Part shown: in pieces, positions 2,076 through 61,611 of the stretch | Numbering within the stretch: position 1 is the first letter of the stretch | How the letters are laid out: every line of letters starts with the position of its first letter | Assembly: GCF_000315625.1 (NCBI RefSeq) | Contig: NW_005434669.1 | Coordinates: forward strand, 775,138 to 839,137 | DNA: 64,000 nucleotides | Direction: 5' to 3' | Source of the DNA: Guillardia theta CCMP2712 | Lineage: Eukaryota; Protista; Cryptophyta | Translations under genes and position numbers: made by a program | The notes under the pieces: model-generated | The model's database searches: none | The model's input: the letters and a program-made list of their open reading frames with translations, nothing else | Told to the model about the DNA's origin: nothing

Positions 2076-2375
2076 CTCAAGATAGAGGGCTAGTGAAGGG
2101 GAGACGGGCAAGACAAGGAAACCACCTCTTTTCGGCTCAAATGAAAGATACACCTTTGTCATCAAACATCTGAAAATGCATCTTCTCGAGGCATAAGCGA
2201 CACTAGCCCTGCTCCCGTGAGCAGGTCTCCCCTACTGACTCTCTCGTCCTGATCTTATAGAGGCTCACGACGAGAATCACATCCCGCTCGCCACGCCCAC
2301 ACGTTGATCTCCTCTCCCTCATCTTTGCGATCCCATTCTTGTCACTCAGATTCGCCGAGAATACCTGATACACTC

Positions 2376-2924
2376 ATGACCGAAGACAGCTCTGCAACTG
2401 TTCAGCTCTTCCCCCGTCGCAAGCTTGGCGACTCCGACATCCCCCAGCGAGGTCGTGCTCCTCTCACCATAGACCTCCCCGTCATCCAGTCTCTCTTCAG
2501 CATCCCGCAGGTCGAGGCCTGCAAGGTGCTCGGGGTCTCCTTGACGGCGATGAAGCAGCTTTGCCGGAAGCTGGGGGTCAGCCGCTGGCCCTACACCCGT
2601 CCTTGCACCACCGGACGCCGCCGACATAGAGCGAGGAAGTCAAAGCCCGACACCCAGCCTGAGCAAGCCAAGCCCGTGTGCGAGGAAGCGGTGGCAGACT
2701 GCCAAGGGAAGCAGGAGCTCGAGTCTGCCAGCTCAACGTCACCTGGCTCGTTGTCGGAGGACGACAGTGCTGTAGAGGACGCGGAGGCGTCAGGGGGTTC
2801 TGTAGTCGAGCCGACAGCAGCAGAGGAGGAGGTAACAGAAGGGAGCTGGATGCCGAACACGGGGTGGATCGACTGGTACATGGAGTGTGGAGACGAGGAA
2901 GACGTGTCTCAGAGGCTAATATGA
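2376..2924 (+). CDS. RWP-RK domain transcription factor, copy 1 (intronless)
   Basis: IQSLFSIPQVEACKVLGVSLTAMKQLCRKLGVSRWPY is an RWP-RK signature. First in-frame ATG at 2376, acidic C-terminus, TATA-like CTTATAGAG near 2253. Confidence 0.88.
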   Translation: MTEDSSATVQLFPRRKLGDSDIPQRGRAPLTIDLPVIQSLFSIPQVEACKVLGVSLTAMKQLCRKLGVSRWPYTRPCTTGRRRHRARKSKPDTQPEQAKPVCEEAVADCQGKQELESASSTSPGSLSEDDSAVEDAEASGGSVVEPTAAEEEVTEGSWMPNTGWIDWYMECGDEEDVSQRLI

Positions 2925-3534: not shown

Positions 3535-4122
3535 ATGCCCCATCCGATCCTCCCATCCACTGTTCAGCTCTTCCCCCGTCGCAAGCTTGGCGACTCCGAC
3601 ATCCCCCAGCGAGGTCGTGCTCCTCTCACCATAGACCTCCCCGTCATCCAGTCTCTCTTCAGCATCCCGCAGGTCGAGGCCTGCAAGGTGCTCGGAGTCT
3701 CCTTGACGGCGATGAAGCAGCTTTGCCGGAAGCTGGGGGTCAGCCGCTGGCCCTACACCCGTCCTTGCACCACCGGACGCCGCCGACATAGAGCGAGGAA
3801 GTCAAAGCCCGACACCCAGCCTGAGCAAGCCAAGCCCGTGTGCGAGGAAGCGGTGGCAGACTGCCAAGGGAAGCAGGAGCTCGAGTCTGCCAGCTCAACG
3901 TCACCTGGCTCGTTGTCGGAGGACGACAGTGCTGTAGAGGACGCGGAGGCGTCAGGATCCGAGCTAGGAGAGCTTTGTGCCCAGGGGGAGGAGGGGTCTG
4001 TAGTCGAGCCGACAGCAGCAGAGGAGGAGGTAACAGAAGGGAGCTGGATGCCGAACACGGGGTGGATCGACTGGTACATGGAGTGTGGAGACGAGGAAGA
4101 CGTGTCTCAGAGGCTATGCTGA
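3535..4122 (+). CDS. RWP-RK domain transcription factor, copy 2 (near-identical duplicate with different N- and C-termini)
   Basis: 3559-4116 is almost identical to 2397-2918 apart from a 36-bp in-frame indel and about 2 substitutions. Confidence 0.75.
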   Translation: MPHPILPSTVQLFPRRKLGDSDIPQRGRAPLTIDLPVIQSLFSIPQVEACKVLGVSLTAMKQLCRKLGVSRWPYTRPCTTGRRRHRARKSKPDTQPEQAKPVCEEAVADCQGKQELESASSTSPGSLSEDDSAVEDAEASGSELGELCAQGEEGSVVEPTAAEEEVTEGSWMPNTGWIDWYMECGDEEDVSQRLC

Positions 4123-56451: not shown

Positions 56452-57087
56452 TCAATTCCAAATAAAAGGTGCTTCATCTACCTGAGTCAGACCAAATGGT
56501 AAGAACTGGTCTTCCTCTTCCAAATAATAATCTTGAAGGGATGATTCGAATGAGTCCCCGTTGATTACTAGATGTGGTTCGTCGACATTGGCCTGTTCAT
56601 CGTCTTCCGCAAACGGCTGTCTGGTGTTGTCATACCACAGATCACACGACGACTGATTGACAACCTCGCATATATCATCGAAAGTGATATCAACTGAGAG
56701 ATCAGTTGAGCCGCTTTGATGATCATCAGGGGAGCCACACGATAAACTCTCAACGTCCGTTGGCTCGGAAGAGGAGGAAACAGTAGAGGAGAGCCTGGGA
56801 GGCTGAATGGACTGCCTCTTTCTCTTGGGGCCTGGATTAGGTGTCTTGAAGGGCCATCTAGCAATGCCGAGCTTTCTGCATGCTCGTTTGATAGCTGTAG
56901 GACAGATGCCAAGTTCTTGAGACACCGCAACCAGAGGCCTGTCGAAGAAACTTTCCAAAAGTTCTCGAGTGAGCAACACGGGCTCGTCTTGAAGCGAGTC
57001 GTAGAGCTGAGTTTCTTGGGCACGCTTCTTTCGTGGACAGACCATGGCAACTGAGCGACGGTATGTTTTCAAGTTGGATGCTTGCAT
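56452..57087 (-). CDS. RWP-RK domain transcription factor (intronless)
   Basis: LTRELLESFFDRPLVAVSQELGICPTAIKRACRKLGIARWPF. TATA-like CTATATAG at about 57286-57293. Confidence 0.88.
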   Translation of the reverse strand: MQASNLKTYRRSVAMVCPRKKRAQETQLYDSLQDEPVLLTRELLESFFDRPLVAVSQELGICPTAIKRACRKLGIARWPFKTPNPGPKRKRQSIQPPRLSSTVSSSSEPTDVESLSCGSPDDHQSGSTDLSVDITFDDICEVVNQSSCDLWYDNTRQPFAEDDEQANVDEPHLVINGDSFESSLQDYYLEEEDQFLPFGLTQVDEAPFIWN

Positions 57088-57891
57088 CTTTCGGTGTGTT
57101 TCCTGGATAGTGGACGAGACGGATGGTGGTTGATAGATAAGAGAGAGAGAGAAAGAGAGAGCGGTAGGTGTATGAGAGCAAGTCGGAGATGGAATGAAGA
57201 GGAGGAAGTTCAAAGGAGAGGAAGAGCTGAAAGAGGAGAGTGGCAGGCGGGCAGGCGATTGTGGTGGACGGGGAGGATTGCAGGGCTATATAGACAGCGG
57301 GAGTTGCGCACGTCGTGCGGAGGAACACCTAGGAGGCCAATGTCGGTTTGGATATCGGTTTCCAGATTGCCGTGCTGACAGTTCGAACTTAAAAGTATTT
57401 TGAAAGAACTCTGGGGCCCCAAACTCCGAGCGCCGCTCGACTTGCATAAAAACAATTCATGAAAAAGAAGCGTTTCAAAATACTGATGGTCAGCATGATC
57501 GTCTTGAAACAACGTGTTCTGGCGCCTGGCAAAAACCCAGCGCTTCAAATAAACGTGCAGTTATGGATTGGTCATGAACGATCAGAAACCAGCCATGAGC
57601 TATGCGAAACCACGAGATTCCATATTCGAAATCACTTCTTTTGGATACGACCGACCCCTTCCCCCGGCCCAAATTTGTCACACCCCAACACGCTCCACCT
57701 CCCTCACTCCCCGTGCGCCATCCTTAGTACTGACATCCGTCCTCCGCCCCAAACCCCGCCCCTGGACTCTTCTCTTTATATTTGAACAGTTTGCATCAAT
57801 AGTCCACAAGCACTCCTGCTCCTCCAACACAACTGCTAAGGTCGACTCCTCCGAACCGCACAAGCTTTCTTCTTGCTCCTATCTTCTGAAC

Positions 57892-58377
57892 ATGAACACT
57901 CAAGGCCGTCGACGAGTCGCTATGGTATGCCCTAGAAAGCAAACGTCTGAAAATGATGAGCCTGTTATGCTCACTCGAGAGCTCCTACAATCTTATTTCG
58001 ATCGTTCCCTTTCTCAAGTTTCTGCTGAGATTGGAATTTGCCCCACTGCCATTAAGCGAGCTTGCCGGAAGCTTGGAATTGCAAAATGGCCTTACAAAAC
58101 CCCGAATCCTGGTCCTAAGAAGAGAAAGACGAGTGATGCATCCGATCATCAAGCAGAATGTCCATCAACCTGGGATCAGTGCATATGCACACAGCAAAGC
58201 ATGCAGGCATTTCCCAGCCTCCCGCTAGCAAAGGACCCTTTCGAAGAAGAGCGAAATCTATGCTTCGAACAGATCAGAACAACAACTTCATGTTACTATG
58301 AAGACCTGGACCTGGAGCAGTGCTTGCTGATGGAAACAGACATTGCTTTTCACTGGAATGATACAGAATTTTTTTGA
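57892..58377 (+). CDS. RWP-RK domain transcription factor (intronless), divergent paralog of 56452-57087
   Basis: LTRELLQSYFDRSLSQVSAEIGICPTAIKRACRKLGIAKWPY. Shares VAMVCPRK and KTPNPGPK with its neighbour. Confidence 0.88.
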   Translation: MNTQGRRRVAMVCPRKQTSENDEPVMLTRELLQSYFDRSLSQVSAEIGICPTAIKRACRKLGIAKWPYKTPNPGPKKRKTSDASDHQAECPSTWDQCICTQQSMQAFPSLPLAKDPFEEERNLCFEQIRTTTSCYYEDLDLEQCLLMETDIAFHWNDTEFF

Positions 58378-58893
58378 ATTTGTTTAAGATTATGTGAAAT
58401 AAATCATATGAATTGTTATCGAGTTCACCGTAAAAAGGCCTCTCAAATACACGAGAGCGCATTCCTTGTAGGTTCTGCTCTAGAGTGGCAATAGGCAGAA
58501 GTGCGTCACGTTGTAGATTGAATCTGACAGGGACACAGCGGCTGAGGCACGGTGAGTCCGCCGCAAATCAGTGATCTAGCTTTCCGAGGCCCATCTCAGT
58601 CATCATGGCATCGGACATCTCAGCGGCGTCGTGTCCTTTGTGGCCTTCGTGTCCTTCGTGGCCATCATTCCAAGTTCTGGTGCTGGATGGTTCCGGTACG
58701 CGTCTCCCCGGCTCAGTCACCGTCGGCCGCCCGGCAGGCCCGGCGGCTGAGTGGGCGGGCCGCCCGGCTGAGTCGCCGACTTGCGGCCCGCCCGCGCCTC
58801 GGAGTGGGCCGGGTGCCAGTGCCCGGCCCAGTGCCAGTGCTTCAGTCCGATCAGGCGGCCCGGGGCCCCGGGGCCGCCGGGGTGACCGTCACG

Positions 58894-60838
58894 GCGGGAA
58901 CTTTCCGGCTGAGTACCACGGGTGACGCCCCTCAGCCGCGGGGAGTCCGGCTCGGGCCGCGGGCACTGTCAGCGGCACCGTGGCACCGTACCGTCCGCCC
59001 GGCCCAGCGGCCCCGGCGGACTCGCGGGGCACTGCACGGCCCGGCCTGGCGTCCGACCGTCAGGACCATTCTGCCAGCCTGGGGTCACTCGGACGGCAGT
59101 GAGCCTCCCCGGTGGCATACCTGACTCGGGCACTGTCCGATCATCGCGGCGATCGGCGGTCGGCGGCGGCGGTCCGATCAGCGGCTCCGAGGCTCGCGGG
59201 CTGACCGACTCACGGTACTTCACCGTGACGGTACTAATGACTGCCGCAACAGCCGTCCGATCGGGCCGGCCGCAGATCGGACGGAGATTCCGAACTTTCC
59301 GAGTTCGGACACTGCGGTCACCAAGTACGGTCACCGGCCGGGCGGTGGCCTCAAAGTTAAGTTAAAAATGAGTACCGTCGAGGACAATCAGCTCAGTTTT
59401 AGCTAGCCTGCCCTGCCCTCCGGCAGTGTAGCTGAGAGTCCCCTCAGTTACTCAAAGATAAGTTACTTGAAAATCAGTACGAGGACAGCTGAGAGTAGCC
59501 TAGTACGGTCAGGAGTACCGTCAGCCGGTAATGAAAAGAATAGTCAAGCGGGAACTTTCCGGCTGAGTACCACGGCCCTCAGCCGCGGGGAGTCCGGCTC
59601 GGGCCGCGGGCACTAGCGGCACCGTCACGGTGGCACCGTACCCGGTCCGCCCGGCCCAGCGGCCCCGGCGGACTCGCGGGGCACTGCACGGCCCGGCCTG
59701 GCGTCCGACCGTCAGGACCATTCTGCCAGCCTGGGGTCACTCGGACGGCAGTGAGCCTCCCCGGTGGCATACCTGACTCGGGCACTGTCCGATCATCGCG
59801 GCGATCGGCGGTCGGCGGCGGCGGTCCGATCAGCGGCTCCGAGGCTCGCGGGCTGACCGACTCACGGTACTTCACCGTGACGGTACTAATGACTGCCGCA
59901 ACAGCCGTCCGATCGGGCCGGCCGCAGATCGGACGGAGATTCCGAACTTTCCGAGTTCGGACACTGCGGTCACCAAGTACGGTCACCGGCCGGGCGGTGG
60001 CCTCAAAGTTAAGTTAAAAATGAGTACCGTCGAGGACAATCAGCTCAGTTTTAGCTAGCCTGCCCTGCCCTCCGGCAGTGTAGCTGAGAGTCCCCTCAGT
60101 TACTCAAAGATAAGTTAAAAATCAGTACGAGGACAGCTGAGAGTAGCCTAGTACGGTCAGGAGTACCGTCAGCCGGTAATGAAAAGAATAGTCAAGCGGG
60201 AACTTTCCGGCTGAGTACCACGGCCCTCAGCCGCGGGGAGTCCGGCTCGGGCCGCGGGCACTAGCGGCACCGTCACGGTGGCACCGTACCGTCCGCCCGG
60301 CCCAGCGGCCCCGGCGGACTCGCGGGGCACTGCACGGCCCGGCCTGGCGTCCGACCGTCAGGACCATTCTGCCAGCCTGGGGTCACTCGGACGGCAGTGA
60401 GCCTCCCCGGTGGCATACCTGACTCGGGGTGACTGTCCGATCATCGCGGCGGTCGGCGGTCGGCGGCGGCGGTCCGATCAGCGGCTCCGAGGCTCGCGGG
60501 CTGACCGACTCACGGTACTTCACCGTGACGGTACTAATGACTGCCGCAACAGCCGTCCGATCGGGCCGGCCGCAGATCGGACGGAGATTCCGAACTTTCC
60601 GAGTTCGGACACTGCGGTCACCAAGTACGGTCACCGGCCGGGCGGTGGCCTCAAAGTTAAGTTAAAAATGAGTACCGTCGAGGACAATCAGCTCAGTTTT
60701 AGCTAGCCTGCCCTCCGGCAGTGTAGCTGAGAGTCCCCTCAGTTACTCAAAGATAAGTTAAAAATCAGTACGAGGACAGCTGAGAGTAGCCTAGTACGGT
60801 CAGGAGTACCGTCAGCCGGTAATGAAAAGAATAGTCAA
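58894..60838. repeat. Tandem array of three ~650-bp units (654, 648, 643 bp) within palindrome island 7 (about 58540-60838); two 42-bp motifs per unit
   Basis: Units start with GCGGGAACTTTCCGG at 58894, 59548 and 60196, and end with AATGAAAAGAATAGTCAA. Confidence 0.95.
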
Positions 60839-60892
60839 ACTGGCAGGCAATGCAACAATGAAAAGAATAGTCAAACTGGCATGCAATGCAAC
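60821..60892. repeat. 36-bp tandem duplication at the right junction of the array
   Basis: AATGAAAAGAATAGTCAAACTGGCA(G/T)GCAATGCAAC occurs twice. Confidence 0.9.
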
Positions 60893-61027
60893 AAGTATGC
60901 AATGTGACTGTCCTGCTCCGATGGGACGGCAGGGCAGGATGCTGATAAGAGAGCAATCGGAGGGTCTCAGACTGACTACAAAGACTGCGATGCCCGCCAA
61001 GTAGAGAACACATGGAAAATCTGTTTG

Positions 61028-61438
61028 TTATTGTGGTAGTTGACTGGGAAATCCAGTACAGTACTGTTGTTTCTTAGTAGCAAGTGAGAGGGTACCTGCC
61101 ACTTTTCCGGTAATGTTCTTGAATGCAGTTCTTTGCGGCGAGGTTAGATAGCACGGAACTCTTTCCCAGTGCACCGGGTAACGAAGAAGTTGTCTGGACT
61201 TGTTCTGTTTTTCAAGCTCTCTTGTTGTAGTACGCATATACATATCAAAAGAGTTCATATCGACTGATAGAGGGGAAATGGGAGAAGGAAGGCAGTGAGA
61301 TTTGTCGAGGAGGAATACGGTATGCCGTAGTAGCTTTTTGCGCACCACTGTTTCAACCTCAAACTTGTCGGAGACAGGACCTTTCATCAGGGGATCAAAT
61401 GCCCTCCAGCATCGCAAACGACTGTGCCATACCTGCAT
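61028..61438 (-). CDS. Hypothetical protein
   Basis: 136-aa ORF with plausible composition and no recognised domain. Confidence 0.3.
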   Translation of the reverse strand: MQVWHSRLRCWRAFDPLMKGPVSDKFEVETVVRKKLLRHTVFLLDKSHCLPSPISPLSVDMNSFDMYMRTTTRELEKQNKSRQLLRYPVHWERVPCYLTSPQRTAFKNITGKVAGTLSLATKKQQYCTGFPSQLPQ

Positions 61439-61611
61439 GGAAGGATCCCAAGTGCACGATTCCAGCGATATATCTCAACTCCATAGACCAACCCGACGGG
61501 AGAGTCGTAGTGAACGGTAACGAGAGAGATTGATGCAGGCTTTCCTGATGCAATGTCATTTCCTGTACAGTTGCCAAGGCTGAGAATCTCAGGAATCATC
61601 AAGAGGAGGAG

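Follow-up and report, generated by a model that had tools for sequence, protein, structure and literature searches.

What process leaves three neighbouring copies of one DNA segment almost free of substitutions and yet marked by short insertions? The question is raised by a tandem array at positions 58896-60838 of a 64,000-nt stretch of the cryptophyte Guillardia theta CCMP2712 (contig NW_005434669.1), which was analysed as a whole and is called the window below. In nearly all eukaryotes that have been studied, small deletions outnumber gains, and most small insertions arise as slippage duplications. Here, we describe the differences between the units of the array, the read data that bear on them, and an independent set of changes in copies of a long interspersed nuclear element (LINE) dispersed through the same genome. 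We find micro-insertions that outnumber deletions and that copy the adjacent flank, reverse-complemented, around a single and usually extra C or G.

The tandem array and its differences

The array consists of three head-to-tail units of 654, 648 and 641 bp, delimited by an anchor search, MAFFT alignment and self-BLAST:

58896..59549, + strand: tandem unit 1, 654 bp (anchor search and alignment; self-BLAST identity of 96-98 % to units 2 and 3)
59550..60197, + strand: tandem unit 2, 648 bp (anchor search, alignment, self-BLAST)
60198..60838, + strand: tandem unit 3, 641 bp, where the array end reads ...AATAGTCAA|ACTGGC (anchor search, alignment, self-BLAST)

The identity between units, 96-98 % with gaps counted, and their head-to-tail order are those of a tandem duplication, and the unit junction, ...AATAGTCAA|GCGGGAAC..., lacks microhomology. 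The array has a G+C content of 61 %. With the exception of a LINE tail motif, the 648-bp unit is unique to this locus in the 87.1-Mb assembly; gene conversion from paralogues, which we considered as a source of the unit differences, therefore cannot account for them. Rfam gave no RNA family match in 58000-61500, and Tandem Repeats Finder is blind to the array, whose unit period exceeds 500.

MAFFT alignment of the three units reproduced exactly the seven insertion or deletion (indel) events and the one substitution that had been reported in an initial annotation of this DNA. They are listed below, where X1 contigs come from a 2021 run and X2 contigs from a 2011 run:

58922..58928, + strand: insertion of GTGACGC, unit 1 only (alignment; spanned by an X1 contig without difference)
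58968..58970, + strand: insertion of GTC, unit 1, at the centre of CT|AG, giving CTG-T-CAG (alignment)
59626..59631, + strand: CACGGT in unit 2, also at 60274-60279 in unit 3, missing in unit 1 (alignment)
59643..59644, + strand: insertion of CG, unit 2, giving ACC-C-GGT, the minimal C...G insert (alignment; in an X2 contig)
59466..59469, + strand: insertion of CTTG, unit 1, inside a LINE tail, giving AAGT-T-ACTT (alignment)
60429..60431, + strand: C replaced by GTG, unit 3; on the minus strand, ...ACAGT + CAC (alignment; in X1 and X2 contigs)
60452..60452, + strand: A replaced by G, unit 3, the sole substitution between units (alignment, reads)
60702..60711, + strand: 5-nt slippage loss of one CCTGC after 60706, unit 3, CCTGCCCTGCCCT to CCTGCCCT (alignment)

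The strongest palindrome in the array is the product of CACGGT, CACCGT-C-ACGGTG, an odd palindrome with 6-nt arms. A palindrome scan showed that GTGACG of the 58922-58928 insert is matched in inverted form by CGTCAC at 58888-58893, which lies 29 nt upstream. The product GTGACTG (minus strand ...CAGT + CAC) arose three times independently, at the array site 60429-60431 and at two dispersed LINE positions, L047:71 and L006:154.

Differences dominated by indels among near-identical repeats are typical of assembly error, and an artefact of assembly or sequencing in GC-rich repeated DNA would look like this; we reject it as almost certainly wrong because independent read sets from 2011, 2021 and 2026 carry the unit differences, which are thus real. 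An X1 contig of 7102 nt covers 58600-58958 with zero differences, and GTGACGC is therefore real. The unit-3 GTG and G variants are held by a 554-nt X1 contig, and the unit-2 CG by a 614-nt X2 contig. In raw 38-nt reads from two 2026 runs there is no indel discrepancy, and read depth over the copy-specific sites is continuous and like that over unique flank. The inserts are also 2-7 nt long and are not homopolymer errors. One X1 contig has CCTGC in a unit-3 context; two of the three copies have the longer form, and this is what bubble-popping would give, not evidence of polymorphism.

Two observations concern the edges of the array. At its downstream end lies a 36-bp tandem repeat of 2.1 copies (AATGAAAAGAATAGTCAAACTGGCAGGCAATGCAAC; window 60821-60894), the first copy of which overlaps the array unit by its final 18 nt (AATGAAAAGAATAGTCAA); the unit end has therefore been duplicated again on a smaller scale. 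Directly upstream, the unique flank 58700-58895 is very GC-rich and dense in palindromes (e.g. GGCCCGGGGCCCCGGGGCC and GACCGTCACGG), and seems to be an island of the type seen in the repeated unit.

Insertions in the array and in LINE copies

Each unit holds two pieces of a dispersed motif of about 40 nt (TTACTCAAAGTTAAGTTAAAAATCAGTACGAGGACA...). It has more than 1300 matches in the genome, which share one sharp common edge and vary on the other side from 36 nt to 4.3 kb, and the full copy encodes a 1348-aa open reading frame (ORF) with an RVT_1 domain. The reverse transcriptase ORF, the common edge and the variable truncation together identify the motif as the 3' tail of a non-LTR retrotransposon, here on the minus strand, and a role of the motif as a target or recognition signal was ruled out on this identity. 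The LINE is young and abundant. Its intact 4.3-kb copies are 99-100 % identical (a representative, about 4.3 kb long with the 1348-aa ORF intact, is L061:5600-9900, or G000:C22:193199-197499), most matches are 5'-truncated to 36-200 nt, and all copies end in ...CTTTGAGTAAA on the element's own strand, with no poly(A). The pieces in the array are as follows:

60100..60135, - strand: 5'-truncated LINE 3' tail, repeated at about 59452-59491 and at 60743-60778 (more than 1300 matches; read pile-up starts at 60100)
59348-59395, 60000-60047 and 60643-60690: second, degenerate LINE tail

The dispersed tails provide an outgroup: none of about 1300 has CTTG, and the CTTG in unit 1 is therefore a derived insertion.

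As an independent test set we took changes private to one copy among 39 LINE copy segments, 27.9 kb aligned. They comprise 54 insertions (38 of at least 2 nt), 10 deletions and 47 substitutions, a bias of insertions over deletions with p = 2e-8. The inserts are 1-12 nt long and have 68 % G+C, compared with 61 % in their flanks, and 10 of the 16 1-nt insertions are C. Together with five array events, the LINE set gives 43 insertions of at least 2 nt, of which 40 lose no flanking base and 7 are exact tandem duplications.

Each of these 43 insertions was scored, one spacer length between the arms at a time, by the longest perfect inverted repeat containing inserted bases, and the scores were compared with three nulls, namely random inserts, shuffled inserts, and the observed inserts moved to other contexts:

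spacer 0 nt: z = -0.3 (observed sum 58 against 59.8 in the null; depleted against the shuffle null)
spacer 1 nt: z = 6.5
spacer 2 nt: z = -0.5
spacer 3 nt: z = 4.6
spacer 4 nt: z = 2.6
spacers 6-10 nt: z between -1.1 and 0.5

The enrichment of inverted-flank inserts over shuffled controls, at spacers 1 and 3, bears out the expectation of the initial annotation. At spacer 1 it is present in the LINE set alone (p < 0.001) and in the five array events alone (p = 0.005-0.05). The odd palindromes centred on one G or C that had been noted in the array are thus non-random and recur among 38 independent LINE insertions; GT-G-AC and TT-G-AA, two of the cases cited, have 2-nt arms without statistical weight, and for CTTG the better palindrome is AAGT-T-ACTT. 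The description as P-nucleotide-like has to be given up, as even palindromes (spacer 0) stand at or below expectation.

On the strand with the extended 3' end, 29 of the 43 events fit the form flank + X + reverse complement of flank, under a loose criterion of k >= 2. X is C in 18 of these 29 (p = 3e-4), and flank + C + reverse complement of flank is the commonest form. Clear LINE examples are catc-C-GATG, aac-C-GTT, atc-C-GAT and gta-C-TAC; CGT-G-acg, TCAT-g-atga, CGAA-g-ttcg and ctgAG-T-CTCag are further ones, and the array contributes caccgt-C-ACGGTg, acc-C-Ggt and aagt-t-aCTT. Inserts of the form C...G number 14 of 43 where 4.9 are expected (p = 2e-4), an excess that would follow if both 3' ends at a break first gained a C.

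The indel:substitution ratio of the array, 7:1, is far above that of non-LINE duplicates in the same loci (8:59; Fisher p = 2e-5) and is not significantly above the 64:47 of decaying LINE copies (p = 0.14). The array therefore stands out from the former but not significantly from the latter. The suggestion that the process is peculiar to this DNA is not supported: the insertion process is genome-wide, heterogeneous between loci and not specific to the array. Insertions are unevenly distributed, with 8 insertions and 0 substitutions in 371 nt of L038 and 5 against 1 in L044, and insertion-rich copies tend, weakly, towards palindrome-rich flanks. Young long copies are clean (L062, 3.6 kb). LINE subfamilies, whose divergence took place under selection in the master lineage, differ almost only by substitutions (L051 and L058, 36-38 mismatches and 1 gap).

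Some individual copies deserve mention. Within 8 nt at LINE reference 384-391 (...gccgtttccttgttcgcc...), three independent copies (L057, L044 and L042) carry different micro-insertions (CAAG, GTTCCGAA and TTCAA), which looks like a local insertion hotspot. The eight insertions of L038 (G000:C87:221073-224261), with no private substitution, fall within about 60 nt at LINE reference 204-257, and one of them (CCGATGATCGCG+gc) nearly equals the array sequence CCGATCATCGCGGC (59141-59154), differing only in the central base of the palindrome. At L054 (G000:C1:216092-219270), a long GGGAGCA/GGGAGCG microsatellite adjoins a truncated LINE copy that has deletions only.

The same symmetry is seen in bulk sequence. 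We surveyed palindromes in 231 kb, comprising the window and the non-LINE parts of the loci, with a third-order Markov baseline. Perfect inverted repeats with a 1-nt spacer occur at 1.7-2.0 times expectation for 5-nt arms and 2.0-2.8 times for 6-nt arms (z up to 17), with spacer 3 second in excess. When arms are restricted to those with at least two A/T, which excludes GC-rich low complexity, spacer 1 still stands at 1.45-1.65 times (z = 6.4 and 4.9), and spacers 0 and 2 drop to 0.9 (0.93-0.94 for spacer 0). C or G stands at the centre of 62-83 % of the 1-nt-spacer palindromes. Among 493 palindrome sequences, 363 are distinct, and the excess therefore does not come from one repeat family.

Candidate mechanisms

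The explanation that we favour, with a probability of about 0.55 for the whole of it, is a fold-back micro-insertion process that acts genome-wide and is recorded by the array. In it, the array is a 648-bp segment, intergenic, rich in G+C and in palindromes, that was recently duplicated in tandem to three copies, and these copies, identical at the start, serve as a passive recorder of mutation. The process adds 1-12 nt with nearly no loss of flank, at what would be a break or nick. Typically, the strand with the extended 3' end gains one extra C, and a short stretch that repeats the preceding bases in reverse complement follows it, which leaves a C/G-centred odd palindrome. From this geometry we infer that a DNA end folds back on itself. 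This could happen through a covalently closed hairpin with one extra nucleotide at its tip, later nicked open on the other strand, or through addition of a single untemplated dC followed by turn-around synthesis; blunt end joining would complete either route, and repeated rounds would build GC-rich palindrome islands of intergenic DNA. The genome encodes Ku (one match), a Pol X palm domain (one match; C27:564966-565304) and family-A polymerases (at least five loci).

A more specific version is tentative and clearly less probable than the general one. In it, a distinct end-processing pathway would first extend a 3' end by a single dC, then copy the flank by fold-back or hairpin, and do so at recurrent intergenic break sites, with micro-insertions at about the pace of substitutions in neutral DNA, and would write G/C-centred, GC-rich palindrome islands de novo. 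The frequency, the strict odd symmetry and the C centre are unusual among known templated-insertion processes, and literature searches yielded nothing specific on the same phenomenon in this kind of organism.

Several points weigh against the fold-back explanation. Simple intramolecular snap-back with a loop of 1 nt is implausible on steric grounds, and no enzyme is tied to the process. The insertions GTGACGC (E1) and GTC (E2) do not fit the rule of flank + C + reverse complement, and the looseness of the criterion behind the 29 fits counts here as well. Three copies cannot polarise changes specific to unit 1, CTTG excepted, nor the CACGGT difference. The read comparison covered the array differences, the LINE events being taken from the assembly alone, and some insertions in LINE copies could date from reverse transcription and not from later. 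The sample, made up of a single LINE family, a single array and about 231 kb from loci L004-L063 and the window, is small, and the ordinary spectrum of the non-LINE duplicates, with 59 mismatches and 8 gaps, means that the process is uneven.

Replication template switching, of the quasi-palindrome or 'hairpin extension' type, would produce an inverted copy without a double-strand break when a nascent strand switches briefly to the complementary or nascent strand as its template and then returns. It is known in humans and yeast (PMC5453318; PMC13493898), and hairpin or pseudo-palindrome extension is rare in yeast (PMC13493898). Like quasi-palindrome mutations, the events in the array and in the LINE copies create or lengthen palindromes without loss of DNA, and nearly all are pure insertions with no flank lost. 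Some lengthen a small prior palindrome, as in CT|AG to CTGTCAG, CTG|AG to CTGAGTCTCAG and GTTA to AAGTTACTT, and a prior imperfect inverted repeat was improved in E2 (the GTC insertion), E7 and L042:344. However, 13 events start with an inserted C at the centre and have no prior inverted repeat to pair, which this mechanism needs, and insert ends do not in general match the flank, though return to the template needs a match. Template switching also predicts substitutions and deletions, whereas insertions exceed deletions by 54:10. Events that mostly lack a prior repeat, are insertion-only, have an untemplated centre and are far commoner than reported in yeast or human make this an unlikely account.

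The initial annotation had proposed that this DNA is cut repeatedly via hairpin intermediates, the opening of which leaves P-nucleotide-like additions, as with hAT transposases and RAG. The agent would be a DDE transposase that forms hairpins or a nuclease similar to RAG (hAT, Transib or Mutator-like element, MULE). As in P-nucleotides of RAG V(D)J joining and of Transib, hAT and MULE footprints, the reverse complement of the flank is added with little or no flank loss and no need for prior homology. In Hermes/hAT chemistry, a hairpin offset by 1 nt gives an odd palindrome centred on one base, and the centre is indeed the complement of the next base in CACGGT, CG, L045:279 and L045:435. In L057:579, L057:619, L010:88 and L006:154, by contrast, it is C despite a neighbouring A, C or T, and the offset-hairpin rule holds in about four of eight clear cases. 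P-nucleotide palindromes are even, and even palindromes are not enriched here; ours are odd, with an extra, mostly C, centre. No site has target-site duplication remnants or terminal repeats, recombination signals are likewise lacking, and the events are scattered over unrelated loci genome-wide. MULE transposase domains are present at at least six loci (six near-identical matches of 29-31 bits, over the cut-off, in open frames of 114-142 aa), none of them linked to insertion sites. The hAT dimerisation domain had no match in the genome, with controls equally silent, and a six-frame genome search for RAG1 (PF12940) had no match, nor did any control genome match. Of the proposal, a fold-back or hairpin-like signature survives, and a transposase, for which neither target-site duplications nor transposon termini speak, is an improbable agent.

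Two further candidates were set aside. Transposon excision footprints were sought as target-site-duplication-like direct repeats around each insert, and none was found; the inserts are 2-12 nt long, and none has the form of a target-site duplication plus a centre. The heptamer CACTGTC, which resembles a recombination signal sequence, is present at the array C>GTG and at L047:71, but at both sites the positions of the cuts and the bases gained are at odds with RAG or Transib chemistry. The MULE matches themselves (G000:C25:383473-383637, C367:7636-7800, C11:495834-495998 and three more) suggest a recently active Mutator-like element family.

Canonical end joining by polymerase theta, with snap-back templated insertions (theta-mediated end joining, TMEJ, or synthesis-dependent microhomology-mediated end joining, SD-MMEJ), we judge to be about as improbable as the nuclease. 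TMEJ scars are usually a deletion with microhomology. In common with them, the events here include short inverted copies of break-proximal sequence, sometimes after untemplated bases: the inserts are inverted copies of junction-adjacent sequence in 29 of 43 events, and family-A polymerase domains are present, none identified as polymerase theta. Polymerase theta switches between untemplated and snap-back synthesis, and templated insertions in inverted orientation are on record (PMC11292364). The snap-back favoured in Drosophila, however, has 1-3 bp of pairing and a loop of 6 nt (PMC11292364), whereas the enrichment here lies at spacers 1 and 3, weakly at 4, and is nil at 6-10. The insertions are pure (40 of 43 without base loss; 54 insertions against 10 deletions) where TMEJ combines deletion and insertion with microhomology, and their frequency rivals that of substitutions.

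Abortive LINE retrotransposition, in which reverse transcriptase at an endonuclease nick would add nucleotides without a template and use the local DNA end, not RNA, for copying, is a speculative and very improbable source of such scars: non-LTR reverse transcriptases do add untemplated bases and jump templates, and the element is young and abundant, with more than 1300 mostly extremely truncated tails, two of them inside the array unit, but the insertion sites showed no target motif of the endonuclease, and the events lie on both strands and at many positions.

Setting and significance

The array lies in an intergenic region 0.5 kb downstream of an ORF with an RWP-RK domain (57568-58377, + strand; Pfam). 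The window has three such ORFs, the others being at 2304-2924 (+) and 56452-57213 (-). Segments 2397-2794 and 3559-3956 are 99.7 % identical over 398 nt, without a gap.

Neutral DNA in this genome gains short GC-rich fold-back inserts at about five times the frequency of base loss and at about the frequency of substitution. If a distinct end-processing pathway is indeed at work, there would be a class of non-coding sequence made by repair and not by duplication or transposition. If the pattern is confirmed genome-wide, it would constitute a mutational signature that is new and whose nucleotide rule is precise and open to biochemical tests, and it would offer an origin for palindrome-rich intergenic islands, possibly including hairpin-forming regulatory or RNA elements. 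The tandem array is an amplicon-sized recorder, convenient for measuring the process directly, and the organism would become a natural system for studying hairpin and fold-back intermediates in end joining.

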